A DNA stretch of 42,125 bases, taken from contig MCFE01000722.1 of NCBI GenBank assembly GCA_002104905.1, positions 1 through 42,125 of the forward strand, given 5' to 3'. Below are positions 1-42,125 of this stretch, piece after piece (positions within the stretch are counted from its first letter, which is position 1; every line of letters starts with the position of its first letter). The position numbers and the translations under genes were made by a program. Below the pieces are notes generated by a model. It was not told where the DNA came from, made no database searches, and worked only from the letters and a program-made list of their open reading frames with translations. This stretch comes from Basidiobolus meristosporus CBS 931.73 (taxonomy: Eukaryota > Fungi > Basidiobolomycota).

Positions 1-3000
1 ACCACAGAGAACCTGGTTGCTGCAACTATTGTAAAAAGCCAGGACACTGGGCAAGAGAATGCAAGAAGAAACAAGCAGACAAAAAACAGAAACTAGAGCA
101 GGCAAACCATATAACTAGTGATGAACAGTTATTTGTAACCATACAAGAGAGTGCAAGTAACCAAAGTAATGAATGGTATATTGACTCTGGATCATCACAG
201 CATATTTGTGGTATAAAGGAGTGATTCAGCAACGTCAAAACTATTCCCGTAAGAAAAGTTTATCTGGGAGATAACTCTGCTCTGGAAGCTACTGCAAGTG
301 GGTCTATACAACTAAATATGAGCAATAGCTCAGGGGCAACTACAGCAAGACTCACTGACGTACTCTATGTACCTGGAATAGCTAAGAACTTACTCTCAGT
401 CAGTAAAGCAACTGCTCAGGGACTGAAATTTGCTTTTACTAAGATGAGCTGCTCAATATTGAGTGAGAATGGATAAAAATTAGCTTTGGGAATCAGAGAT
501 CACAGTAAATACAAGTTACAATGCAAGATCATTGTATCTGAGTATGTCAACATTGCTGAAACTGATGAAACCAACTGGGAGACGTGGCATAGGAGGCTGG
601 GACACATTGGGGAACAGAAAATGAGCCAATTGGTGAAAAATCAGCTTGTTTTGGGCCTAAAATACTCAATTCCAATCAAATTGAATATTTGTAAGGGATG
701 TTCATATGGCAAACAAGCTAGGCAACGTTTCAAGAGCCCAGAAGGCATCAATACCACCAAAATATTGGCTATTGTACACTCAGACATATGTGGCCCCATG
801 AGAACACTGACCTTTGGAGCCAAGAGATACTTTATGACGTTTATTAATGACAAAACAAGATATATATGGGTGTACTTCCTCAAAACAAAGGTTGAAGCTT
901 TAGAGATGTTTAAGCAATTCAAGAACATGGCTGAAACACAAACTGGGTGTAAATTGAAGGTACTACAAAGTGACAATGGAGGAGAATACTGCTCAAAAGA
1001 GTTTGCAAAGTACTGCTTGTCTATGGGTATACTTCAACAGACCACAGTTCCTCATACTCCACAGCAAAATGGAGTAGCAGAACGTGCAAATAGAACAATA
1101 GTCAAGATGGGAAGATCTATGCTATATGCTAAGGGAATGGACTGCAAGTCCTGGGCTGAATTTGTTGCTACCACAGTATACATCAAGAACAGATGTCCTA
1201 CAACAGCACTGCGTGATTCTACACCCTTTGAAGCATATACAGGCAAAAAACCAGATCTCCAGCACCTCAAGATCTTTGGCAGTGATGTTTTTTATCACAT
1301 CCCTGACAAAAAACGCCCAAAGTTGGAACCAAAGAGTAGGAAAGGGATCTTTCTTGGGTATTGTGAAGATACTAAAGGGTATAGAGTGTATGATGGCAAA
1401 ATTCAGAAGCTGATCAAGAGCAGGGATGTTGTATTTGAGGAGAATTCAGATCAGAAAGCCACAGAAATCATTGGCCAGCTGCCTGATGATGCAATCAACA
1501 CTAATGAAGAAGATACATACCAAATCCAGCCAGATACAGAAGATACTTCTACCAGTTCCAGATCAGAACAGATTATCCCAGTTAGGGGATCTACCAGAAT
1601 AAGAAATGCCCCTGGATCCTGGTGGCAGACATCCAATGATCATGACAAAGCTTATCTTGCCTTATGTGCCAAACCTCAGAATCTGGAACAGGCAATGCAA
1701 AGTCCAGTTGCTACTAAGTGGCAACAAGCCATGCAGGAGGAGTACCAATCACTGATCAAGGCAAAAATGTGGGAACTGGTAGATTTACCAAATGGGAGAA
1801 AGCCAATAGGATGTAGATGGTTCTGCAAGATCAAGATAACCTCAAATGGTGCTGTTGATAAGTACAAGGCTAGATTGGTGGCTAAAGGCTTTTCCCAGAT
1901 ACAGGGACTAGACTTTAAGGAAACATTTGCTCCGGTTGCCAGGTTTAACTCCATTAGGACAGTTCTAGTCCTGGCTGCTGAACACAGTCTAGATCTACAC
2001 CAAATGGATGTCAAAACAGCCTTTCTAAATGGGGATTTGCAAGAAACTATATATATGGAGCAACCAGAGGGCTTTACCAATCCAAAAGTGCCCCATAAGG
2101 TGTGCAACCTTAGAAAATTGCTGTATGGGCTTAAGCAGGCACCTAGAGCATGGTATAACAAGGTTGACACATATCTAGAGGAAATTGGGTTCTCTTGTAG
2201 CACTGCAGATCACAGTATATATGTGAAATAGCTCAAAAAGGGTGTGATCATCCTAGTTCTTTATGTGGACAACCTAATCATAGCTACAAGTGACCAAGAG
2301 GCACTTAAACAGACAAAATCAAATCTTTTCAGCAAGTTTGAGTTGAAAGATCTTGGAAAATTGAGCTATTTTCTTGGAATTAAGGTCAAATTTGACATAC
2401 CTACGCAGGAAATTGTGCTGAATCAGTCTAAGTACATCAGGGACATTTGTAGATGCTTCAAAATGGAAAATTGCAAGCCTGCAGCTACTACTATGGACAA
2501 TAACCTGAAATTAAGCAAATCTCAGCCAGTTATAGATGAAAACGGCTCAAGTATGGACCAAAACTTTCCCTATCAGTCAATGGTTGGTAGCCTAATGTAC
2601 TTGATGGTGTCTACATGTCCAGATATTGCAGTGGTAGTTGAATAGTCAGTCAATTCATGCAGAATTATGGATCAGATCAAGTTGCAGCAGTTATGCGGAT
2701 TTTCAAATCTCTACAAGGTACCATAAATATGGTACTGGAATACTCTGGAGCAGCTAATAGGCTTAAATTTGATGGTTATAATGATCCAGATTGGGGTAGT
2801 GATCTGATTGACAGATGCTCTACCACAGGCTATGTATTTCTTTATGCTGGTGCAGCTATTACTTGGAATTGCAAGAAACAACTAGTTGTGGCCCTATCTA
2901 CAACTGAAGCCAAATATATGGCTGCATGTCAAGCAACTAAGGAGGCTATATGGCTACAAAAATTATTCAACAACTTAGGTTTTAATTCAGATGAACCAAC

Positions 3001-5209: not shown

Positions 5210-6760
5210 TTAGATTCGGATCTGGATGCGGGGGAGGCAGATGATTGCTCTGACTTGGATGCCGAGAGCATCGACACGGGCTCTGATACCGTTGCATGCT
5301 CTTGTGTTACTACCTGAGCCATCGGTGGGATTGGGTCTGGGGGATGATGAGTCGCTCAAGCAGACAAATGCATTGGCGCGAATTCCTCCAGCAACGAGCC
5401 TGGCGGTGATATCGGGGCACCCAGTGGCTGGGGAGTTGCCACCTCCGTTGTTTCCTCCGTTGTTACCTCCATTGTTACCTCCATTATTGCCACCGTTATT
5501 GCCACCATTTCCGCCGCTTAGACAGACACTGGCATTCACCTTGATACCCAATAGGTTAGCATCGGCAACGATATCTGGGCAGCTGTTTCCTCCGGAGAGT
5601 GGGGGAGCGTTGGGTCCATTGTTTCCGCCGCTCAAGCAAATGCTTGCATCAACATTGATACCAAGAAGCTTGACCTTAGCAACGATATCAGGGCAGGTGG
5701 CTCCGTTTCCTCCATTATTGCCGCCGTTGTTTCCACCATTGTTGCCTCCGCTACCACCACCCAAACAGACACTAGCATTAACCTTGATACCCAATAGATT
5801 GGCGTCGGCAACAATATCAGGGCAGCTACTTCCACCTGAGAGTGGTGGGGCGTTGGGTCCGTTGTTTCCTCCGCTCAAGCAAATGCTGGCATCAACATTG
5901 ATACCAAGAAGCTTGACTTTGGCAACGATATCGGGGCAGGTGGCTCCGTTTCCTCCATTATTACCACCATTGTTACCACCGTTGTTACCACCATTATTGC
6001 CGCCGTTTCCGCCACCGCCACCACCACCACCTAAGCAAACGTTGGCGTTCACCTTGATTCCTAGGATATTGGCGTCAGCAACAATATCAGGGCAGCTGCT
6101 GCCACCTGAGAGTGGTGGACTTCCTCCGCCTCCTCCACCACCTCCTCCTCCCAAGCACACGTTAGCATCCACCTTGATGCCGAGGACATTCAATTTGGCC
6201 ACGATGTCGGAGCATGGGTTGCCGCCATTGTTGCCACCATTATTACCTCCGTTATTGCCGCCATTATTTCCACCATTTCCTCCGCCACCACCACCACCTC
6301 CGCCACCGAGACAAACATTGGCGTTGACCTTGATTCCCAGAATATTTGCATCGGCAACGATATCAGGGCAGCTATTACCACCAGAAATGGGGGGATTTCC
6401 GCCGCCGCCGCCGCCACCACCACCAAGACACACATTAGCATCCACTGGAACTCCTAAGACATTCAGCTTCGCGACAATATCATTGCAAGGGCCACTACCA
6501 CCGCCTCCTCCGCCTCCACCATTTCCTCCACCGTTACCACCACCATTGCCTCCGCCGTTGCCTCCTCCATTACCTCCACCATTACCTCCACCGTTGCCAC
6601 CGCCGTTGCCACCACCATTGCCACCACCGTTACCACCCCCACCACCACCGCCGCCGTTTCCTCCGCCATTGTTACCACGATAATGAGGCGGAGCAGCTGA
6701 GGCTAATCCTAGGGAGGAAATAGCCGCAAAGAATATTAAAGCCTTGGACGAGAATTTCAT
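5210..6760 (-). CDS. Secreted Gly/Asn-rich protein with 10 Cys-bracketed 20-aa modules (paralog A, 516 aa)
   Basis: Intronless ORF with ATG and an N-terminal signal-peptide-like segment (MKFSSKALIFFAAISSLGLASA). It has 10 copies of C-x-D-I-V-A-x-x-N-x-L-G-I-x-V-x-A-x-V-C separated by GGN/GGNN linkers. TATAAA on the minus strand near 6880. Confidence 0.9.
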   Translation of the reverse strand: MKFSSKALIFFAAISSLGLASAAPPHYRGNNGGGNGGGGGGGGNGGGNGGGNGGGNGGGNGGGNGGGNGGGNGGGNGGGNGGGGGGGGSGPCNDIVAKLNVLGVPVDANVCLGGGGGGGGGNPPISGGNSCPDIVADANILGIKVNANVCLGGGGGGGGGGNGGNNGGNNGGNNGGNNGGNPCSDIVAKLNVLGIKVDANVCLGGGGGGGGGGSPPLSGGSSCPDIVADANILGIKVNANVCLGGGGGGGGNGGNNGGNNGGNNGGNNGGNGATCPDIVAKVKLLGINVDASICLSGGNNGPNAPPLSGGSSCPDIVADANLLGIKVNASVCLGGGSGGNNGGNNGGNNGGNGATCPDIVAKVKLLGINVDASICLSGGNNGPNAPPLSGGNSCPDIVADANLLGIKVNASVCLSGGNGGNNGGNNGGNNGGNNGGNNGGGNSPATGCPDITARLVAGGIRANAFVCLSDSSSPRPNPTDGSGSNTRACNGIRARVDALGIQVRAIICLPRIQIRI

Positions 6761-7260
6761 ATTATTGTAAGTACAAAGATGATATAAGGGCCTCTATGAT
6801 ATAGAATTAAGTAGAATAATGAAGGCACCAATTGAGATATGCTGGAATGATACTTTTGGGTCAGTTCTTCACGGCATTTATAGAGAGCCACGAACCCCTT
6901 AAGCTCCGGGATCATTCGATGTACACTCTAGGAACACTGCAGATATTAGGATAGACATACTTAAATTTGGCTCGAAATTGCCGCCGCCCCTTTCTTTCCC
7001 TCTGGAGCGCTTTTGATGCTCCTAAGAATGATCACCACGCATGGTCACGTTGGTTCCAATCCATCATGAACGGCACTTAACCTTAAGGAGCTAATGCAGA
7101 TTGGAAGCAATCCCTTGGATGATGCATCGCTCTCACTTCATTCGCATCTCGACAGATATAGGGAGCGGTCTTTTGATATGGTTAGGAGTAATGCAGTTTA
7201 TTCATGATTTTGTTCTTAGTGGCATCACCCAGAAATAATATCGAAGCAATGAAAGCCTAT

Positions 7261-10200
7261 CTAGATGCGAATTTCAATACGTGGGAGGCAGATGATTGCT
7301 CTGACTTGGATGCCGAGAGCATCGACACGGGCTCTGATACCGTTGCATGCTCTTGTGTTGCCACCTGAGCCATCGGTGGGATTGGGTCTGGGGGATGATG
7401 AGTCGCTCAAGCAGACAAATGCATTGGCGCGAATTCCTCCTGCAACGAGCCTGGCGGTGATATCGGGGCACCCAGTGGCTGGGGAGTTGTTACCTCCGTT
7501 GTTTCCTCCATTATTGCCACCGTTATTGCCACCATTTCCGCCGCTTAGACAGACACTGGCATTCACCTTGATACCCAATAGGTTAGCATCGGCAACGATA
7601 TCTGGGCAGCTGCTTCCTCCGGAGAGTGGTGGCGCATTGGGTCCATTGTTTCTTCCACTCAAGCAAATGCTTGCATCAACATTGATACCAAGAAGCTTGA
7701 CCTTAGCAACGATATCAGGGCAAGTGGTTCCGCTTCCTCCATTATTACCACCGTTATTACCCCCATTATTACCACCATTATTGCCACCTCTACCTCCGCC
7801 CAAGCAGATATTGGCATTAACCTTGATACCCAATAGATTGGCGTCGGCAACAACATCAGGGCAGCTACTTCCACCTGATAGTGGTGGAGCGTTAGGTCCA
7901 TTATTTCTTCCACTCAAGCAGACGTTGGCATCGACCTTGATACCAAGAAGATTGACCTTGGCAACAATATCAGGGCAGGTGGTTCCGCTTCCTCCATTAT
8001 TCCCACCATTGTTGCCTCCATTGTTACCGCCGTTATTTCCTCCATTTCCACCACCCAAACAGACGCTTGCATTGATCTTGATGCCTAGCAGATTAGCGTC
8101 GGCAACAATATCGGGGCAGCTACTTCCACCTGATAGTGGTGGAGCATTGGGTCCATTGTTTCTACCGCTCAAGCAGACATTGGCATCGACCTTGACACCA
8201 AGGAGGTTGACCTTGGCAACAATATCAGGGCAGGTGGCCCCATTTCCACCGTTGTTTCCGCCATTATTACCACCGTTATTACCCCCATTGTTTCCTCCAT
8301 TACCACCACCCAAACAGACGCTGGCATTGATCTTGATGCCTAGCAGATTGGCATCAGCAACTATATCTGGGCAACTACTTCCACCGGATAGTGGTGGAGC
8401 GTTGGGTCCATTGTTTCCGCCGCTCAAGCAGACATTGGCATCGACCTTGATACCAAGGAGGTTGACCTTAGCAACGATATCAGGGCAGGTGGCTCCGTTT
8501 CCTCCATTGTTACCGCCATTATTACCTCCGTTTCCGCCACCGCTTCCTCCGCCTAGGCAGACATTAGCGTTGACCTTGATACCCAATAGATTGGCATCAG
8601 CAACTATATCTGGGCAGCTACTTCCACCGGATAGTGGTGGAGCGTTGGGTCCATTGTTTCCGCCGCTCAAGCAGACATTGGCATCGACCTTGATACCAAG
8701 AAGATTGACCTTGGCAACGATATCAGGGCAGGTGGCCCCGTTTCCTCCATTATTACCTCCGTTGTTACCGCCATTATTACCTCCGTTTCCGCCACCGCTT
8801 CCTCCGCCTAGGCAGACATTAGCGTTCACCTTGATACCTAGGATGTTGGCATCAGCAACGATATCTGGGCAGCTACTTCCACCTGAGAGTGGTGGAGCGT
8901 TGGGTCCATTGTTTCCACCACTCAAGCAGACATTGGCATCGGCCTTGATACCAAGAAGATTGACCTTAGCAACAATATCAGGGCAGGTGGCTCCACTTCC
9001 CCCATTATTACCACCATTATTTCCATTGTTGTTGCCGCCATTGTTACCACCGTTACCTCCACCCAAGCAAACACTGGCATTGATCTTGATGCCTAGTAGG
9101 TTGGCATCCGCAATGATATCTGGGCAGCTACTTCCACCCGAGAGCGGTGGGGCGTTGGGTCCGTTGTTTCCTCCGCTCAAGCAAATGCTGGCATCAATAT
9201 TGATACCAAGAAGCTTGACCTTGGCAACGATATCGGGGCAGGTGGCTCCGTTTCCTCCATTATTACCACCATTGTTGCCGCCGTTATTGCCTCCATTGTT
9301 GCCGCCATCTCCGCCACCACTTCCTCCGCCTAAGCAGACATTAGCGTTCACCTTGATTCCTAGGATGTTGGCATCAGCAACAATGTCAGGGCAACTACTT
9401 CCCCCAGAGAGTGGTGGGTTTCCGTTGTTTCCTCCGTTTCCTCCGCCATTACTACCACCACCTCCTCCTCCTAAGCATACGTTAGCATCCACCTTGATGC
9501 CGAGGACATTCAATTTGGCCACGATGTCGGGGCATGGATTGCCACCATTATTACCACCATTATTTCCGCCGTTATTGCCGCCATTGTTGCCACCGTTGTT
9601 GCCGCCATTGTTGCCACCGTTGTTACCGCCATTGTTGCCACCGTTGTTACCGCCATTGTTGCCACCGTTGTTACCGCCACCGAGACAAACATTGGCGTTG
9701 ACCTTGATTCCCAAAATATTGGCGTCAGCCACAACATCAGGGCAGCTATTACCTCCCGAGGTCGGCGGTGTGACTCCACCAGGGTTGCCACCCCCGCCAC
9801 CACCAAGACAAACATTAGCATCGACTGGAACTCCCAGGACATTCAGCTTTGCGACAATGTCATTGCATGAACCTCCTCCGCCATTCCCCCCATTACCACC
9901 ACCATTTCCTCCGTTGCCACCACCGTTGCCTCCATTACCGCCGCCATTTCCTCCGTTGCCACCGCCGTTGCCACCATTACCGCCGCCATTTCCTCCGTTG
10001 CCACTGCCGTTGCCTCCATTGCCGCCGCCATTTCCTCCGTTGCCACCGCCGTTGCCTCCATTGCCGCCGCCGTTTCCGCCGGTACATATCTTGGCATCCA
10101 CCCGGATATCCAGGGTTTTGGCGGCGGCCACCAGGTCGGGGCAGCTCATGCCCCCGGGATTCTTCCCGTCGGAACCGCCCGGTTTGCCGGCGCAAACTTT

Positions 10201-10356
10201 CGCATCGATGTGGGCGCCGTATGTGTTGAGCTTGGCGACGATCCCACGACAGTGGTCATGGTCGGATTTCACCTTGTAGCGGGGCAAGGCGGTCGAAGTC
10301 CCGGCCAGGGAAGCGATCACGGAGAATAGAAGGATGGCTCTGGTGGGAAGTCTCAT
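7261..10356 (-). CDS. Secreted Gly/Asn-rich protein with 22 Cys-bracketed modules (paralog B, 1031 aa)
   Basis: Intronless ORF with a signal-peptide-like N-terminus (MRLPTRAILLFSVIASLAGTSTA) and 22 modules counted by hand. The 3' coding end is nearly identical to paralog A. Confidence 0.9.
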   Translation of the reverse strand: MRLPTRAILLFSVIASLAGTSTALPRYKVKSDHDHCRGIVAKLNTYGAHIDAKVCAGKPGGSDGKNPGGMSCPDLVAAAKTLDIRVDAKICTGGNGGGNGGNGGGNGGNGGGNGGNGSGNGGNGGGNGGNGGGNGGNGGGNGGNGGGNGGNGGGNGGNGGGGSCNDIVAKLNVLGVPVDANVCLGGGGGGNPGGVTPPTSGGNSCPDVVADANILGIKVNANVCLGGGNNGGNNGGNNGGNNGGNNGGNNGGNNGGNNGGNNGGNNGGNNGGNPCPDIVAKLNVLGIKVDANVCLGGGGGGSNGGGNGGNNGNPPLSGGSSCPDIVADANILGIKVNANVCLGGGSGGGDGGNNGGNNGGNNGGNNGGNGATCPDIVAKVKLLGINIDASICLSGGNNGPNAPPLSGGSSCPDIIADANLLGIKINASVCLGGGNGGNNGGNNNGNNGGNNGGSGATCPDIVAKVNLLGIKADANVCLSGGNNGPNAPPLSGGSSCPDIVADANILGIKVNANVCLGGGSGGGNGGNNGGNNGGNNGGNGATCPDIVAKVNLLGIKVDANVCLSGGNNGPNAPPLSGGSSCPDIVADANLLGIKVNANVCLGGGSGGGNGGNNGGNNGGNGATCPDIVAKVNLLGIKVDANVCLSGGNNGPNAPPLSGGSSCPDIVADANLLGIKINASVCLGGGNGGNNGGNNGGNNGGNNGGNGATCPDIVAKVNLLGVKVDANVCLSGRNNGPNAPPLSGGSSCPDIVADANLLGIKINASVCLGGGNGGNNGGNNGGNNGGNNGGSGTTCPDIVAKVNLLGIKVDANVCLSGRNNGPNAPPLSGGSSCPDVVADANLLGIKVNANICLGGGRGGNNGGNNGGNNGGNNGGSGTTCPDIVAKVKLLGINVDASICLSGRNNGPNAPPLSGGSSCPDIVADANLLGIKVNASVCLSGGNGGNNGGNNGGNNGGNNSPATGCPDITARLVAGGIRANAFVCLSDSSSPRPNPTDGSGGNTRACNGIRARVDALGIQVRAIICLPRIEIRI

Positions 10357-11165
10357 GGTTCAGCGGCCGAAAAATCTCGTTGTCTGGTTGGGAGGATGGG
10401 TGGATATTAGATGGAATAGAATAGGATTGGATTGGAGTGAATTGGATTGAATTGAATTGAATGATAGAATGAATGAATATGAGAACTTGAAATGGAGATC
10501 GGGAGGTCGCTCGAAACGAATCGAGTCGAGTTGTATGAACTGATTGATTGAGTTGATCTCGTTGGGTGGGAAGGTATTTATGGAGATGGGATGGCTCAGG
10601 GGATACCACCCGGTGGCTCCATACTGCCTTTGGCTAGTTCGTGGTGCTCATGCAGACTGCATGGTCATCCATATATGGCAATCCAGGGAATCTCCCTACC
10701 GCCACCAACCTTGTTTCCCCTTGGGATCGGGTTGCCATTACGATCGCTTGTGTCACTAATGAATGCACGTGTCCCCTGAATTTAGCGCATGGATTTAGCA
10801 ATGCCACACTTTATGCTGGATGCAAGCGATCCCTCGTAGAATTTAGGGATCCGCTCGATCGGCAGGGAAACTAATGCGGTCTCGTTGGCAACATTAGCGC
10901 TGGGAATACATTGGGTGGAAGGGGAGAGGAGAGGAAAGGAGAGGAAAGGAAAGGAAAAATTGGATCCCCTCCGTGGAGACGGTCGAAAGTAATCAGATGC
11001 GGGACGGTAATTGGTCTCAATGGGAATTAATCGTTCCCAGATTTGGATTTATTGAAATGGCAGTTGGGTAGAAATTGTATACGTGAGTGAATGGATTGCT
11101 GCTAACTTATGTAAAAGGTTCATTTGATCATGATGGGAGGAGGGGGGAGTGGATAGTCTTGGGGA

Positions 11166-12488
11166 TTAGAGTCGGATCTCGATACGCGGAAGGCATACCA
11201 CTGCTCGAACTCGAATGCCTAGGGCGTTCACGCGGGCGCGGATCCCGTTGCACATACGAGAGTCGACTTGGTTGTTGGTGATAGGACGGGACGCCTCGTT
11301 TCCACTGAGACAGACGAAAGCATTGGCACGAATCCCAGATGCCACCAAACGGGCAGTGACGTCGGGACAGGTGGATGAGGACCCATTGCCAAGCCCATTG
11401 CCGAATCGATTCCCGGGTTGATTGTTGCCCCCGCTTAGGCACACGTCGGCGTTGATTTGGATGCCCAGGACGTTCGCGTCGGCAACGATGTCGGGGCACC
11501 GGTTGCCGCCTCGCAACCTTGGAATGAACTGACGCTCATTTCCTCCGTTGAGGCAGATGTCGAGATCCGCCCTGATGCCAAGAAGGTTCAGTCTGGCCAC
11601 GATGCCACGACAGGCATCGTCCCTGGGACCACGGCTGGATTGGTTGCGGCCACGGTTGTTTCCACTCAGGCAAACATCAGCATTGACTTGGATGCCCAGG
11701 ATATTTGCGTCGGCGACAATGTCTGGGCAGCTGGTTCCACCTGAGAGCGGACGGTCTCTACCACGACGGGCTCCGCCACCGAGACAGACATTTGCGTTCA
11801 CTTGAATACCGAGAAGGTTCAATCTGGCGACCACATCGGAGCAGGAACGATCCCTGTTACCGCCACGATTACGAACACTGCCATTCCCATTGCCGTTGCC
11901 GTTGCCGTTGCCATTTCTATTCCCATTCCCACCCAGGCAGATACTCGCGTCCAACTGAATCCCAAGCAGGTTGGCCTCGGCCACGATATCCGGACAGGTC
12001 TGACCCGCGTTGCGTCCCCTGCCTCTACCTAGGATCTCATCGACCTCGTTACCGATCCCTCTTCTACCGCCACCATTCAAGCATATGTTGGCATCGACCT
12101 TGATCCCCAATGCATTCAGCCTAGCCACTATATCATTGCAAGCGCCATTTCCGCGGCCTCTCCCTCTTCCGCCGCCACGACCGCCACCGTCACGGGGATT
12201 GCCACCAAGGCAAAGGTTGGCGTTCACGTTGATCCCTAGAAGGTTGGCATCGACGACCACGTCAGGGCACTCCATGTCCCTAGGACTGCGACCCCTACGG
12301 CCATTCCCCTCTTTTCCGATGCATACCGCGGCGTCGATGCTGGCCCCGAAAACGTTGAGCCGGGCCACGATCCCTTGGCAGTACTCACTGCCATAGCCGG
12401 ATTTAAAGTGGGAAGGGGCGGCAATGGTGCCGGACAAGAATGACAGCCCGGATATGAGAAGTAGGGTGTGTGTGGAAAACTGCACCAT
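11166..12488 (-). CDS. Secreted protein with 10 Cys-bracketed modules and Arg/Gly/Asn-rich linkers (paralog C, 440 aa)
   Basis: Signal-peptide-like N-terminus (MVQFSTHTLLLISGLSFLSGTIA), the same module consensus and the same C-terminal LPRI(E/Q)IR(L/I) tail. TATAAA on the minus strand near 12555. Confidence 0.9.
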   Translation of the reverse strand: MVQFSTHTLLLISGLSFLSGTIAAPSHFKSGYGSEYCQGIVARLNVFGASIDAAVCIGKEGNGRRGRSPRDMECPDVVVDANLLGINVNANLCLGGNPRDGGGRGGGRGRGRGNGACNDIVARLNALGIKVDANICLNGGGRRGIGNEVDEILGRGRGRNAGQTCPDIVAEANLLGIQLDASICLGGNGNRNGNGNGNGNGNGSVRNRGGNRDRSCSDVVARLNLLGIQVNANVCLGGGARRGRDRPLSGGTSCPDIVADANILGIQVNADVCLSGNNRGRNQSSRGPRDDACRGIVARLNLLGIRADLDICLNGGNERQFIPRLRGGNRCPDIVADANVLGIQINADVCLSGGNNQPGNRFGNGLGNGSSSTCPDVTARLVASGIRANAFVCLSGNEASRPITNNQVDSRMCNGIRARVNALGIRVRAVVCLPRIEIRL

Positions 12489-13438
12489 ATTGTAAGAGCT
12501 TGCTTTTGTGTAAGCTTGAGTATACTGAGGATGGGGTTGAGCCGGAGCCTATTTATACACCGCCAGCATGGTATGGTGAGCAAGGCGGGTGTGGGCGTGG
12601 GCGTGGGCGTGAGTATACCTGGGATGGAGATGGAGACGGTCGACCAGAAGCTAGCTAATGCAACGTAGCCAATATGATCGCTGTGCAGGGCAACAGCAAC
12701 CCGAGGATGTCCACGATCTTGTGGTTTTCACCCCATCCGATGCATCCGCCAAAGAGGCAGGCGAATCGATTTGGCCTCAGAGTGGAATGGATATCTCGTC
12801 AGATCACGCTACATCTGTTTGGCCAACGAGGTGCAACACGTTGTATGTCTGCGCACGGCATCGGCGGCGGTGGTGGTGTGTGGTGGTGGTGTGCCAACGT
12901 GAATGCAGTCTCAAGAGAGCAATGCGCTCACCTCACAGCCAATTCATGGCATTTGTCGGGAGTGGAGTGAGTTAGATCAGCATCCTAGCTAGCATGGCTC
13001 AGGTAGGGGAGTGCATAATTATACAGGGTTCAATGGCGCGTTACTACCAATTTCCCATCCCTTATCTCCGAGACAGCTGACCAAGCTGGTGAAACTGATC
13101 GAAAATTTTTCACCATCGGTGTGCGTGTCCCGCCCAGCATCGATTTGTCGTGGGAAAAAATGGTGTCGTCGCGGATGGCCCATGGCTCATGGCAACCCTA
13201 CCCCACTTCCGATTCCCTTATGTTGCGGAGTGGAGATCCCGTGACATCCCAATTGGATGCTGTCGAACCTTTCGAGCCAACCCTAACCTCCAGCCTGCAC
13301 GACCACTGCGTGTATTCACCTTTCCCTACCCCACACCTGCGCTGGTGGGACCCTCGATACCTGCACCGTTCCAAGACCTAACTTCACCTTAGCACGCGCC
13401 CTTCATTGTACATTTCCCCTCACCAAGCATCACACAGT

Positions 13439-15028: not shown

Positions 15029-16315
15029 CTAGTAAGCACCACTCTTGTGGGTCCGGCTTCGGCGTCTGTTGTGATGGCTGCTACCAGCCCCGAGCTTTTC
15101 CAGTAAGGCTTCCAGGCCACTAAGCTTGCTGCCCAACAATCCCGAGACACGGCTCAGTCCGGCTAGGATTCTACGGTTTCGACGGATACTGGCGCCGGAT
15201 AGTCGGAGATTCCCTCCAACGCCGCTGAGGCGTCTATTCAGAAGGGCAATCACTCTGGCAATGCGACGGAATGATCGGCTGGTGATATTGGTAACGTTGG
15301 TAACCTGATCGCCTCGGCCTCTACCTCCGCCTCCACCACCTCCATTACCGCCATTTCCTCCATCACCTCCGTTGCCGCCATTTCCTCCGCTGCCTCCATT
15401 ACCTCCATTGCCACCGCTGCCTCCATTACCACCGCTACCTCCATTTCCACCACCGCCACCGTTACCTCCATCACCGCCATCGCCTCCATCTCCACCGTCA
15501 CCACCATCACCACCGCTTCCTCCATTGCCACCACCACCTCCTCCTCGGCCGCCACCTAAACCGCCTCTTCCTCTAAGGCCACCTAAGCCGACTGTCCCCA
15601 AGTCGTAGCCGTTAATGATGATGTTCGTCAAACCACCAGCACCAGCATGTCCATTACCAATACCACCAACACCACCACCGCCACCGCCACTGCCACTGCC
15701 ACCATTACCATTACCATTACCACCGCCATTTCCGTTGCCTCCAGAGCCGCCATTGCCACCGTTTCCGCCATTGCCACCGTTGCCGCCAGAGCCGGAACCG
15801 TTTCCGCCGCCTCCGTTACCACCGTTACCGCCGTTGCCACCATCACCGCCATCGCCGCCGTTACCGGAACCGCCGTTGCCACCAGATCCACCATTTCCGC
15901 CGCTGCCACCGTTTCCGCCGTTTCCATTACCATTGCCACCACCGCCTCCGCCATTTCCGCCGTTCCCTCCATTTCCTCCATTGCCTCCGTTTCCTCCACC
16001 ACCGCCGCTACCACCGTTCCCGCCGTTACCACCATCACCGCCATTTCCACCGCTACCACCGTTGCCCGAGCCAGAGCCGCCGCCGCCGCTGCTGCCGCCA
16101 CCCCAGAAATCGAAGTCGTCGTAACCACCATCGCCGCCGCCACCGCCACCACCGATACCGTCCAAGCCGTTCAGGATCTCCTCGATCTCCACATCGTTGA
16201 AGTTGGAGACAGAAGAACCTTTGTTACCATAACCGGGCTCGGCGGACACCAGGTGGCTCGAGAGAAGGGAGGTGCTTAGGAGAGCGAGCGAGAGGAGGGC
16301 GCGGGAGAGATGCAT
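15029..16315 (-). CDS. Secreted glycine-rich block protein (428 aa) with GGN/GGD repeats and a cationic C-terminal domain
   Basis: The ATG at 16315 opens a signal-peptide-like segment (MHLSRALLSLALLSTSLLSSHLVSA). TATAAA lies on the minus strand near 16507, so the upstream extension in the ORF track is probably not coding. Intronless. Confidence 0.8.
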   Translation of the reverse strand: MHLSRALLSLALLSTSLLSSHLVSAEPGYGNKGSSVSNFNDVEIEEILNGLDGIGGGGGGGDGGYDDFDFWGGGSSGGGGSGSGNGGSGGNGGDGGNGGNGGSGGGGGNGGNGGNGGNGGNGGGGGGNGNGNGGNGGSGGNGGSGGNGGSGNGGDGGDGGNGGNGGNGGGGNGSGSGGNGGNGGNGGNGGSGGNGNGGGNGNGNGGSGSGGGGGGVGGIGNGHAGAGGLTNIIINGYDLGTVGLGGLRGRGGLGGGRGGGGGGNGGSGGDGGDGGDGGDGGDGGNGGGGGNGGSGGNGGSGGNGGNGGSGGNGGNGGDGGNGGNGGGGGGGRGRGDQVTNVTNITSRSFRRIARVIALLNRRLSGVGGNLRLSGASIRRNRRILAGLSRVSGLLGSKLSGLEALLEKLGAGSSHHNRRRSRTHKSGAY

Positions 16316-29630: not shown

Positions 29631-29925
29631 GGTGGCGATGACAAGTTTAAAGCTGAGACGGAGAGCTTTCAACTCGATTTAATGCCAGGTTGATTAAAAT
29701 CCGATAAATATTGTTTTGACCCCAGGGAACGAAACATGGGGCAATTATTGATGTTTGATTAGAATGTGCTCCTTGCTGATCGTACCAGTTTAGCCTTGAT
29801 GCCACCGGATGAATCGATATGAAACGTTGCTACTTCGCCACAGTCACTTGAAGTATAAAATTCCAAAAGTGAGTGGGAACGCCTACCCCCTCCCACTGTC
29901 CCGTTTAGCCATTTGCTCTGGTCTC

Positions 29926-30591
29926 ATGTTTCGGGCGCTCGCTTATCTTTGCTTGTTCTTTGGGTGCCTTCTTACTTTCACCGATGCCTTCTACAACCAG
30001 AATATTGCATGTGGCTGGCCAGATATCACAAGATATGAGTGCATGAGGCGAACTGGGTGTCAATGGTCGCCAGTGTATGGTACTGGGTACTCGGGGTATT
30101 CTTGCTTCTATCCCCCGCTGGAGGTAAGTGTAAGGGCTCGCTGCGGCCCCGAGTCAATCACTCTGTACGAGTGCACCCATGATAGAAGCTGCTTGTATGA
30201 GGAATCCAAAACGGGAAATCCATCTTGCTTTCACAAGAAACCACCTGCTGGTTCTAGCGCTACTGATCAGAGCATTGATTGTGGTTTCCCTGAGATGCAA
30301 GCCACAGAATGCCCAATCGACTCGGGTTGTCAGTGGTCACCCGGCAATGGATTGAATTGGTGCTATTTCCCGAGAGATAAGCTTATCAATCAAAGGACAA
30401 CCCCATGCGGAAACCAAGCTTCAAGAGTGGAATGCACGAAGGTAAACAAGTGTCTCTTTGATACTCTAGCTACGGGAAGCGCTACCACATGCTTCTACAA
30501 CCCCGGTGGAAAGCCCAAGCCGGATATACCAGAGGGGTTCGAGGCTGTTGAGACCTCAACGCAGTCCGTGTCAGAGACCGTAAATGTTTAG
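29926..30591 (+). CDS. Secreted Cys-rich protein with four trefoil (P-domain)-like repeats (221 aa)
   Basis: Signal-peptide-like MFRALAYLCLFFGCLLTFTDA is followed by four repeats of C-G-x-P-x-I-T-x-x-E-C-x5-C-x-(W/F/Y)-x8-12-C-(F/Y)-(Y/F/H). Intronless. Confidence 0.75.
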   Translation: MFRALAYLCLFFGCLLTFTDAFYNQNIACGWPDITRYECMRRTGCQWSPVYGTGYSGYSCFYPPLEVSVRARCGPESITLYECTHDRSCLYEESKTGNPSCFHKKPPAGSSATDQSIDCGFPEMQATECPIDSGCQWSPGNGLNWCYFPRDKLINQRTTPCGNQASRVECTKVNKCLFDTLATGSATTCFYNPGGKPKPDIPEGFEAVETSTQSVSETVNV

Positions 30592-39042: not shown

Positions 39043-41914
39043 CTACTGTTGTAGCTTTGATACAAGAGTGTGTAGCTCAGGGGAATTTGTAGGTAAGTTA
39101 ATAAGAAGTGATGATAGTTCCTCAGTGCTCAGGACACTGTTCAGTGGGAAGGGGGGTAGCAAGAGAGGTAAGAATGACTTGTGAACAACATTAATGAGGG
39201 GAATGTGATAAGGATTGATATTCATCATAAAGGGAGTGTGCTGCTGCAGATATTGCTGCCAAAGGTCTGTCAAGTACTTCAGGTAGGCCAGCTTGGGTTT
39301 TCTGACTGCAGAATATAGTGAGCAAACTTCTTGACTTCAGGATCTCCAAGTATAGTTCTCCAGCAGGAGCCAGGTGTTGTGTGGTGTGTTCTCTTCCAGG
39401 CCTTAATCAGTGGGTTGTTGCAGTTGTGAAGTCTGAGGTATAATCTGGTTCTAAGGTAGAGAAGTCTGATCTTATAGGGCATAAACCCAAAAGCACCAAG
39501 AATAGCATGTCTGTAGGGGCATTCAGGCAAATGAGGCACCAAGGAGGTAATGCACCATACTGCAAACTTGTCAAGCTTAGTGCAGTCTCTAGAAGTAAGA
39601 GAGAGAAGTGGTAAGCCAAATTCCAGGACAGGGAAGACAAACTGCTTGAGTAGAAGAAGGCAGCTGGGAGCTGAAGTTGTAGGAGGAGTAACAGCCAGTA
39701 GCTTGTGGAGTGCCTGTCTTGCCAGGATAATTCTCTTCTTCAGGTGTGCTCCAGAGTCTAGTCCAGTAGGAAGGAAAGGAAAGCCAAGATATGTAGCAGA
39801 AACCTGAGCAGGTAGAGTGGAGTTCTCCAAGTTGATGGGAGAGCCCAAAGGTGCTGTCTTTGTAATGGAAAGCTGGAGATTATTCTTGTGCAGATACTGG
39901 TGGATGGTCTGGGAGTCTTGATGCACATTGGAGGAGGATATTCTGATGCCATCAGCAAAGAGAGTAACCAGGCAGTCAGCTGAGAGTCTTGGGAAATCAT
40001 TCAGGAAGATGGCAAACAGTATAGGACCAAGCACAGAGCCTTGAACCACTCCATTAGGAATTGAGAACACTGGTGATTGCTCACTTGGGTGAAGAATTCT
40101 TGCTTGTGGATCCAGAAACAGAGACCTGACAAGGAGGGTGAGAGAGGTACTGGAGAAGCATTGCAACTTGGACCAAAGCAGATTTCTGTCAACTGAATCA
40201 AAGGCCTTAGTAATATCAAACAGAACTGAGGGATACTTGCACTGGAGAGAGTGATCTTGGCTAAGTATGACTGCATATTCCAAGGAGAGGCCAGGAATAA
40301 AGCCAAACTGTGCAGGATGAGATTTGAGGGAGTCAGAGTAGAGCTCCTGAGCAAGCAGAAGCTCAAACACCTTTCTGCAGGTGGGCAGCAGAGATATTGG
40401 CCTGTAGGAGCTAGGATCCAGGTGCTTTCCTTTACCCTTGTACAGTGGCAGAACATTTGCAAAGGATCATTCCTCAGGAGTAGAAAGCTGGGCTGAGCAT
40501 TGCTGAGACAGTGGAAGCAGAAGTGCAGACATGGCCTTGGTACTAGTCTTCAGAAGCTCATAGGAGATTGTGTCCACACCTGGAGCAGTAGAGTTGGGAA
40601 GCCTCTTGAGCACATTATGGATTCTCCCTTGATCAAGTGCAAGTGGGATGGGCAGAGTCTTGAAGTCAGGATGAAAGCCAGGAGTTGAGTACTGCTTTGT
40701 AGAGAAGAAGATGTTAGCCAGCTGTTCTGTTGAAGGTAACTTCCTGGAAGAGGGCCTCATTGCCCTGTAGAGTCTTGATACTGTTCTTGTTATAGAGTTG
40801 GAAGATTGCAGAGGCAAGGAACTCATAATATGATCCCAGAGCTGAGTATGCAGAGTGTGGTGAATTGCCTTGGAGTGGTGTATTGCTGTCAGGAGGAGTT
40901 TCTCTGTTTTTGGGTTAGGGAAACTCAGGTAGCTTTGTTGCAGGGCTGAAACAATGGATTCCCATTTTCTTGAGGTAACAGCAGTAGTCTTGCATGGCAG
41001 TGAGAGGGAGGCAGACACCAAAATCAGATGCTTCACAAAGAGCCAGGCATAGTTGAGATCATCAGGCAGAGAAAGTAGCAAACTGGCAAGCTTCAAGTAG
41101 TTCCCAAAGTCTTTCTTCTGATTCTTGGTAGCTTTGTGGGTGAGCACAGTAAGTTTTGGCAGCTTCTTCTTCACAACTGGTTGCATAGAAAGGGACCAGG
41201 CTGGGTGGTCAGAGGCTCTCAAGGATCCTAGCTCAGCTCCAGAGAATTGCTTAACTTCATTCACAAAGTAGAGGCCAGCAGCAGAAGGGCAGATCCAGTC
41301 AACACATCTTTTCTCAGATTGAGCACCTAGTGCTAGCAGATGGCTTTCTCTAAGGAAGTTCAGTAGGAATGTAGACCTTGGCTTCATTCTTGCAGTCAGA
41401 GTAGTCTTGTTCTCAGGATGGGGAATGTTGAGATCTCCAAGCAAGATAACAGGTGTTGATATAGATTGCTGGTATTGCTGAACTTTCTGGCATATAACTT
41501 GCACTTCCTGAAGGGCAAGACTTGGAGGCAGATAGCAGAGCACCAGACTGATAGTTGGCAACTGGAGAGCAGCACAGTAAGGGGAGTAAAGAGGAACACA
41601 GAGCTGAGGAGTATTGATGGTACAAGAGATAGAGCAGATAGAGGAGGTATTCTTTGTTCTAGGAGTAGAAAAGCAATATAGATTAGTCAAAAGTATAGAG
41701 GGTAGCTGGACATCAATCAAACACAGGAGGGAAAATCTTGAAAGAAGTCTCTCTAGAGTTGGTCTTGATGGCTGTATGCTGTTGCAGTTAAGCAACAGAA
41801 CTTCAGGTAGTCAGGCAGAGGTTGTAGCTTCTTCAGAGGCAGCATTGACAATGTGACCTGCAGAGTCCCAGAGCTCTTCAAATGGTGCATCACTTAAGTC
41901 AGCAAGGAGGGAAA
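39043..41914 (-). mobile_element. Non-LTR (LINE-type) retrotransposon APE-endonuclease + RT ORF, inactivated, 5'-truncated at the telomere
   Basis: APE motifs: VLLLNCNSI, LLCLIDVQ, LLGDLN, VDWI, SDH. An in-frame TGA at 40467-40469 is followed by YRPISLL, AQFGF, DITKAFDSV, GVVQGSVLGPILF, LFADG (FADD variant) and YLGFPF. A frameshift near 39290 leads into the C-terminal tail. Confidence 0.93.
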
Positions 41915-41915
41915 T

Positions 41916-42125
41916 TTAGGGTTAGGGTTAGGGTTCTAGTGCTTTAGGGTTAGGGCTAGGGTTAGGGCTAGGGTTAGGTAGGTTAGGGTTAGGGTTAGGG
42001 TTAGGGTTAGGGTTAGGGTTAGGGTTAGGGTTAGGGTTAGGGTTAGGGTTAGGGTTAGGGTTAGGGTTAGGGTTAGGGTTAGGGTTAGGGTTAGGGTTAG
42101 GGTTAGGGTTAGGGTTAGGGTTAGG
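41916..42125 (+). repeat. Telomere (TTAGGG)n with degenerate proximal repeats
   Basis: The array is directly visible to the end of the window. The G-rich strand runs 5'->3' toward the end, as expected for a right chromosome end. Variants (TTCTAGTGCT, CTAGGG, TTAGGTAGG) occur in the first ~65 bp. Confidence 0.98.

Follow-up and report, generated by a model that had tools for sequence, protein, structure and literature searches.

The proteins encoded by three tandem genes of Basidiobolus meristosporus CBS 931.73 belong, judging from database comparisons, to an undescribed protein family; 1.84 billion proteins, the PDB, and the AlphaFold database contain no relative of it in sequence or fold. 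The genes, here called A, B, and C, lie in a window of 42,125 nt (positions 1 to 42,125 of contig MCFE01000722.1, GenBank assembly GCA_002104905.1), all on the minus strand: gene A at 5210–6760 (516 aa), gene B at 7261–10356 (1031 aa), and gene C at 11166–12488 (440 aa). An initial annotation of the window had described them as a candidate new family of secreted repeat proteins whose Cys-bracketed modules would be amyloid-forming β-hairpins. This interpretation is partly supported overall, in that a new secreted Cys-stapled repeat family is present and the amyloid hairpin is not borne out. The novelty is limited to the protein family and its fold, and we tentatively propose that the three proteins act as amphiphiles at the cell surface or in the wall matrix.

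Each gene is an ATG-initiated open reading frame (ORF) with exactly the coordinates that the initial annotation gave, and its count of 42 modules was reproduced by a script over all cysteines together with the ORF list. Genes A, B, and C encode 20, 44, and 20 cysteines, respectively, every one within a C-x18-C module, giving 10, 22, and 10 modules with always exactly 18 residues between the two cysteines. A naive C-x18-C pattern search adds 11 false matches, which are linkers that chance to be 18 residues long. The same script found no adjacent cysteines (CC doublets) in A, B, or C. Two module types alternate strictly: type a has Lys/Arg-Leu at positions 7–8 and type b has Asp/Ala-Ala, making five a–b pairs in A, 11 in B, and five in C, and this asymmetry is also kept in relatives from outside the window. 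The evolutionary and structural unit is the asymmetric a–b pair of about 60 residues and four cysteines, and not the single 20-residue module as first proposed.

The linker that joins a to b in genes A and B is conserved, nonrepetitive, and about 18 residues long, and contains Pro-Pro-Leu-Ser-Gly-Gly; in gene C and other paralogues it is more variable in length and sequence. Its length is 16–28 residues in the window genes and 14–42 among all members examined. Spacers from b to the next a in genes A and B are Gly/Asn low-complexity tracts of 23–72 residues, and gene A has a further N-terminal Gly/Asn tract after its signal-like segment. The description of the linkers as Gly/Asn-rich holds for A and B, where they are 73–75% Gly plus Asn and only 5% hydrophobic, whereas those of gene C are Arg/Gly/Asn. 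Tandem repetition is evident at the DNA level as well. A 255-bp (85-codon) array at 7490–9417 (minus strand) in gene B comprises 7.6 copies at 82% DNA identity, each repeat corresponding to module a, an 18-aa linker, module b, and a Gly/Asn spacer, and gene A carries a 243-bp tandem repeat of the same block at 5462–5986 (minus strand, 2.2 copies). Gene B is an expanded paralogue of gene A. All three chains end in a divergent capping pair, at 5228–5425 in gene A, where it terminates in CLPRIQIRI, and with equivalents at 7279–7476 in gene B and 11184–11375 in gene C (all minus strand). The distinct capping pair and a strand-like terminal motif, CLP-x-I-x-I-x-[ILA], are common to A, B, C, and the relatives P0001 and P0002, and related alternating-hydrophobic C-terminal motifs occur in P0020, P0022, P0029, and P0031–33.

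Nine equal-length 189-nt units of genes A and B have a mean synonymous divergence (dS) of 0.73 and a mean nonsynonymous divergence (dN) of 0.047, that is, a dN/dS of 0.064. The repeat copies are thus near saturation at silent sites, yet their protein is almost identical, and no alignment is possible between the stretches of DNA that flank the coding regions of the three paralogues. These divergences and the unalignable flanks indicate that the repeats are old and the protein strongly constrained. Strong purifying constraint covers the a-to-b linker too.

Pro/Leu-rich mirror ORFs run antisense to genes A and B, at 5226–6683 (plus strand, 485 aa) and 7265–10279 (plus strand, 1004 aa). In a control, the plus-strand mirror ORF also had a low dN/dS, 0.12 versus 0.064 in the true frame, because its wobble positions are shared with the true frame. 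The ratio therefore cannot identify the coding strand, an artefact that calls for caution in strand assignment. The minus strand is fixed instead by the signal peptides, the TATA boxes, the loss of the mirror ORF in gene C, and the homologues.

Genes A, B, and C are real genes, given their ORFs, Cys pattern, TATA boxes, and the public annotation of A and B. A TATAAAT box is found at 6876–6882 (minus strand), 116–122 nt upstream of the gene A start codon, and another at 12551–12557 (minus strand), 63–69 nt upstream of the start of the intronless gene C ORF. In the public annotation of the assembly, A and B are single-exon genes identical to the ORFs found here. The public model of gene C is a 447-aa protein at 11166–12569 (minus strand) with an upstream ATG and an intron of ~60 nt, which spans the TATAAAT box; the intronless 440-aa ORF from 12488 is the more plausible model. 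The absence of introns noted initially is therefore confirmed by the public annotation for A and B, and preferred by us for C. Signal peptides had also been reported, and each protein does have a hydrophobic signal-like N-terminus, with 10-residue Kyte–Doolittle maxima of 2.4–2.8, a call based on a hydropathy heuristic rather than a dedicated predictor such as SignalP.

A word-seeded search with gene C recovered only two proteins, both collinear with it, from Basidiobolus, and 40–41% identical: P0001 from B. ranarum and P0002, a B. meristosporus paralogue, each with 10 modules. An exhaustive search of 1.84 billion representative proteins with a profile built from 31 module pairs gave 32 matches at an expectation value (E) ≤1e-3. 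All 30 profile matches that were looked up, as well as P0001 and P0002, belong to B. ranarum or B. meristosporus, and the profile search returned no relative from bacteria or other fungi. To the extent that these representatives sample known proteins, the family is confined to the genus Basidiobolus and is not a general fungal one. Many members are proteins of ~110 aa with a signal peptide and a single pair (four cysteines), including P0010, P0013, P0017–19, and P0025, and many small single-domain paralogues are arranged in tandem arrays, e.g., ORY01642–47. The spacing within modules is 18 or 19 residues across family members, and the features by which we define the family, namely a signal peptide, at least one a–b pair, C-x18/19-C, and Gly at module position 12, are all found in A, B, and C. 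Basidiobolus is known for horizontal gene transfer from bacteria; a bacterial origin of this family was considered and rejected, there being no bacterial match among the 1.84 billion proteins.

In B. ranarum, genes A and B have only fragmentary counterparts (P0009, P0010, and P0021), on contigs of 1–1.4 kb and, at most, 12 kb; their models are truncated or run out of frame into nonsense tails. Short-read assembly and gene calling apparently fail on the Gly/Asn-spaced polyproteins, and the family illustrates how orphan repeat genes are mis-modelled and fragmented in such assemblies. There is no synteny between the A–B–C cluster and the locus of P0002. The latter, on B. meristosporus contig MCFE01000720.1, places P0002 and a methyltransferase gene between two copies of a ribosomal L36e gene (L001, 8823–9535 and 12345–13057), which suggests a local duplication.

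A match to an already characterised family was sought by profile, Pfam, NCBIfam, and fold searches, and none was found, in agreement with the initial view of the family as unnamed. When A, B, C, and seven relatives were scanned against Pfam and NCBIfam, the only signals were sub-threshold noise summed over repeats (DUF2583, GPHH, SpxO, and others), and the PDB searches gave no solved fold. UniRef names three family members "Hydrophobin", labels that we treat as machine-generated. The initial judgement that these are not class I or II hydrophobins stands: the 8-Cys pattern, CC doublets, and a Pfam match are all lacking.

Across 125 unique modules, the position profile has Pro/Asp/Asn at position 2 followed by Asp/Gly at position 3, hydrophobic residues at 4, 5, 6, 8, 10, and 11, and Gly at position 12 in 93%. 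This fits an N-capped amphipathic helix (with Pro/Ser/Asn–Asp as the N-cap), a Gly C-cap, and then an extended segment. AlphaFold, applied to the third pair of gene C with a 78-row pair alignment, gave a moderately confident model (mean predicted local distance difference test, pLDDT, 75.5; predicted template modelling score, pTM, 0.59), with helices at 3–12 and 41–50, the first half of each module (pLDDT ~80), and short helices at 19–22 and 57–60. On this model, a module is therefore probably not a β-hairpin but starts as a 10-residue helix, which a loop connects to a short helix. The a and b modules are predicted, with moderate confidence, to pack into one small domain without a known fold relative. 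Among the 2.3 million AlphaFold database clusters, the sole meaningful match was A0A1Y1Y8H1 (template modelling score, TM, 0.79; root mean square deviation 2.2 Å; 39% identity), evidently a family member given its similarity and accession series. Searches of the pair model against the PDB by Foldseek and by VIA-align wide (best Z 3.0), and against Swiss-Prot models and the ESM Atlas, returned nothing above noise. Comparison of the profile with PDB sequences produced two chance matches (E ~1), in which the module was aligned to a helix–Gly–strand segment.

In the initial annotation each 20-residue module was a disulfide-stapled β-hairpin, stacking into a β-solenoid or functional amyloid in the manner of curli and FapC, with hydrophobic residues alternating on both sides of a central Leu-Gly turn; chaplins are a further model for such a fibre or film. 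Strict alternation is confined to positions 13–21, the second half of the module, where the hydrophobic moment is 2.36 at 180 degrees versus 0.57 at 100 degrees; the first half, with its hydrophobic positions 4, 5, 6, 8, 10, and 11, does not alternate strictly and has a hydrophobic moment that is ambiguous between helix and strand. The two-residue periodicity of the second half does favour a hairpin, as does geometric reasoning, by which a four-residue N-L-L-G turn sets C1 opposite C20 and puts I4/A6/L8 and I13/V15/A17/V19 on one face. The sequences are also rich in Asn and Gly, chaplin clusters are among the weak language-model neighbours (0.53–0.56), and amyloid states are not modelled by AlphaFold, so that a helical prediction does not exclude them. 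Against this, AlphaFold places a helix in the first half of both modules and an independent database model, that of the paralogue, agrees; the conserved hydrophobic positions 5, 10, and 11 fit a helix face (4, 5, 8, 11) and not a hairpin turn; and the Pro/Ser/Asn–Asp at positions 2–3 and the nearly invariant Gly at 12 resemble helix caps. A continuous solenoid is incompatible with disordered spacers as long as those between pairs, which argue for beads on a string, and no Pfam match to Curlin_rpt or ChpA-C was obtained at E ≤1 in 10 members. Since AlphaFold models helices and not β-hairpins, the amyloid or solenoid reading is unsupported as a whole by the predicted structures, and we regard it as distinctly improbable, although assembly of the proteins into films or fibres is conceivable all the same.

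The composition of the proteins points instead to an amphiphile. The modules are 61–62% hydrophobic (0.61–0.62), with a mean Kyte–Doolittle hydropathy of about +1.0, and each pair should expose hydrophobic surface, as its roughly 22 hydrophobic side chains per ~40 ordered residues cannot all be buried. Hydrophobic modules alternating with spacers nearly devoid of hydrophobic residues would make the mature chains multiblock amphiphiles. This composition, and an architecture nearest to that of the multipartite hydrophobins, lead us to favour a role for A, B, and C as surface or wall-matrix amphiphiles on hyphae or spores, analogous to polyhydrophobins, although we put this at somewhat less than an even chance. 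In the moderately confident model, each module begins with a capped amphipathic helix and continues as an extended or short-helical segment, its two cysteines presumably forming a staple. The ~60-residue unit occurs singly in the secreted proteins of ~110 aa, and in five or 11 copies on spacers in A, B, and C, whose chains are closed by the capping pair and the short alternating-hydrophobic C-terminus. In the favoured scheme the Cys-stapled domains would present exposed patches of hydrophobic residues, the Gly/Asn spacers would act as flexible, hydrated, and possibly self-associating tethers, and the resulting coat may be surface-active, adhesive, or water-repellent.

Several points weigh against this role. 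Its basis consists of composition and architectural analogy; no glycosylphosphatidylinositol (GPI) signal or known wall-anchoring motif is present in A, B, or C; and neither PF01185 nor PF06766 matched at E ≤1 in 10 members, including two of those that UniRef calls "Hydrophobin". Protein-language-model neighbours of three members are mostly unnamed fungal clusters, and although hydrophobins are commonest among the named ones, their weak scores of 0.55–0.61 are below the reliability threshold of the tool and serve as leads only. The AlphaFold model represents one isolated pair and no oligomer, and a full-length model of gene C from a 4-sequence alignment was unusable (pLDDT 30). A search of sequencing runs matched two DNA runs, probably the source of the assembly itself, and listed no RNA run; the argument for expression is thus only an indirect one, from the apparent selection on the coding sequence. 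The role of the analogue is itself unclear, as a knock-out of CPPH1 of Claviceps had no phenotype (PMC7827705).

It is also conceivable that the proteins are secreted effector or defence proteins directed against other organisms, for example gut bacteria, insects, amoebae, or the herptile host, with multivalent binding modules carried on spacers. They are lineage-restricted, Cys-stabilised, secreted, tandemly duplicated, and subtelomeric, which are typical hallmarks of fungal effectors, and the many small single-domain paralogues in tandem arrays conform to the same picture. The contig ends in TTAGGG telomere repeats at 41918–42125 (plus strand), which places the cluster 30–37 kb from a chromosome end, and besides these repeats at 41.9–42.1 kb there are LINE (long interspersed nuclear element) and copia elements around it. 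Basidiobolus, moreover, lives in animal guts (PMC9391592). Effector families, however, usually show diversifying selection, in contrast to the dN/dS of 0.06 between the internal repeats here, and the proteins are net neutral, with strongly hydrophobic modules, no cationic or lectin-like signature, and no known target or domain similarity. We therefore consider an effector function unlikely, if less so than the amyloid.

A further alternative is a polyprotein precursor that is cut in its spacers, in the manner of Kex2-processed repeat proteins or Rep1 of Ustilago, to release ~60-aa pairs or 20-aa cyclic modules as diffusible peptides. Tandem repeats behind a signal peptide are consistent with such a precursor, no fungus has more predicted Kex2-processed repeat proteins than B. 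meristosporus, which has 43 (PMC7329392), and processing of polyhydrophobins has been suggested, though it is untested there (PMC12375992). Three RR sites occur in gene C, but they are irregular and inside pairs, not at repeat borders, and A and B are without any KR or RR site, on which ground Kex2 processing was rejected for these two. Conservation of the capping pair and the C-terminal motif argues that the chain functions intact. Release as peptides is accordingly the least probable of the alternatives, and very unlikely.

The surroundings of the cluster include mobile elements and further genes. ORFs of LINE type, with RVT_1 and endonuclease domains, lie at 39279–41795 (minus strand), directly before the TTAGGG repeats. 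A copia/Ty1-type retrotransposon pol fragment (gag_pre-integrs, rve, RVT_2) at 486–2231 (plus strand) sits in an AT-rich block (36–43% GC) flanking the A–B–C cluster. A neighbouring gene at 15029–16315 (minus strand) encodes another secreted protein, Cys-free and with a signal-like N-terminus, in which ~300 residues of Gly/Asn/Ser/Asp low complexity, much like the A and B spacers, are followed by an Arg/Leu-rich, helical-looking C-terminus; a Pfam scan of this protein was without a match. In its public model (315 aa) a portion of this low-complexity tract is treated as intron, although the open ATG frame has 428 codons. A 260-aa ORF at 29809–30591 (plus strand) contains repeated Trefoil (P-type) domains (Pfam E 1.5e-17), which are unusual in a fungus.

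Whatever its function, the family is defined here as a strongly constrained, apparently genus-restricted secreted domain, which has about 30 sequence clusters and is recognisable by a clear profile, its pair unit, the cap, and the C-terminal motif. If its members are effectors, they would make up a new family of such proteins in a gut inhabitant of animals that is an opportunistic pathogen of animals and humans; if they are surface-active or self-assembling, they would constitute a novel protein material and an instance of convergent evolution.

Among known systems, Rep1 of Ustilago and the Kex2-processed repeat proteins share the architecture of a secreted tandem-repeat precursor, but they yield short linear peptides, whereas the Basidiobolus repeats are Cys-stapled domains and A and B lack dibasic sites. 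The chaplins of Streptomyces (ChpA-C, PF03777), the curli protein CsgA, and FapC of Pseudomonas are likewise secreted surface proteins with short hydrophobic repeats containing Gly and Asn, and short chaplins have one Cys pair at a spacing similar to C-x18-C. These proteins are β, in contrast to the predicted helical module of Basidiobolus, which has no Pfam match and no bacterial homologue in our searches. Class I and II hydrophobins (PF01185, PF06766) are small, secreted, and Cys-stapled, and rich in Leu/Ile/Val/Ala and Gly/Asn, as are the Basidiobolus proteins, which lack the C-CC-C-C-CC-C pattern of eight cysteines. No hydrophobin structure was among the Foldseek or VIA-align matches of the helical pair model.

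The closest architectural analogues are the multipartite (tri-, tetra-, and penta-) class II hydrophobins. In CFTH1 and CPPH1 of Claviceps every Cys domain follows a hydrophilic, GN-rich stretch (PMC7827705), as it does in the multipartite hydrophobin CmQHYD of Cordyceps (PMC12375992); CFTH1 covers aerial hyphae and builds an extracellular matrix (PMC13621225). In these proteins, one secreted chain carries several small, disulfide-stabilised hydrophobic domains, each behind a Gly/Asn-rich spacer, and a Gly/Asn-rich spacer also precedes each Cys domain of A, B, and C; the likeness is one of architecture only, and the domains are not homologous. Internal tandem duplication and the presence of single-domain paralogues in the same genomes are further common features. 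The multipartite hydrophobins differ in having eight cysteines with two CC doublets, as opposed to four cysteines in two putative C-x18-C staples, and a β-barrel, as opposed to a pair that is predicted to be helical and matches neither PF06766 nor PF01185. Their hosts are Hypocreales, whereas the Basidiobolus family belongs to the Zoopagomycota.

Hydrophobins are seen as the means by which fungi cope with the air–water interface and, to our knowledge, have been described only from Dikarya. Basidiobolus is a non-Dikarya fungus with aerial conidiophores and ballistic and adhesive spores, and the coating of hyphae and spores in early-diverging aerial fungi is poorly understood. It is possible, if rather doubtful, that Basidiobolus evolved its own surface-active, self-assembling coat protein from scratch, convergent with hydrophobins and polyhydrophobins, in the form of a two-module domain with four cysteines and a new fold that would occur both as ~70-residue monomers and as Gly/Asn-spaced polyproteins. 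If true, this coat protein would represent a third solution, beside the hydrophobins on the one hand and the bacterial chaplins and BslA on the other.

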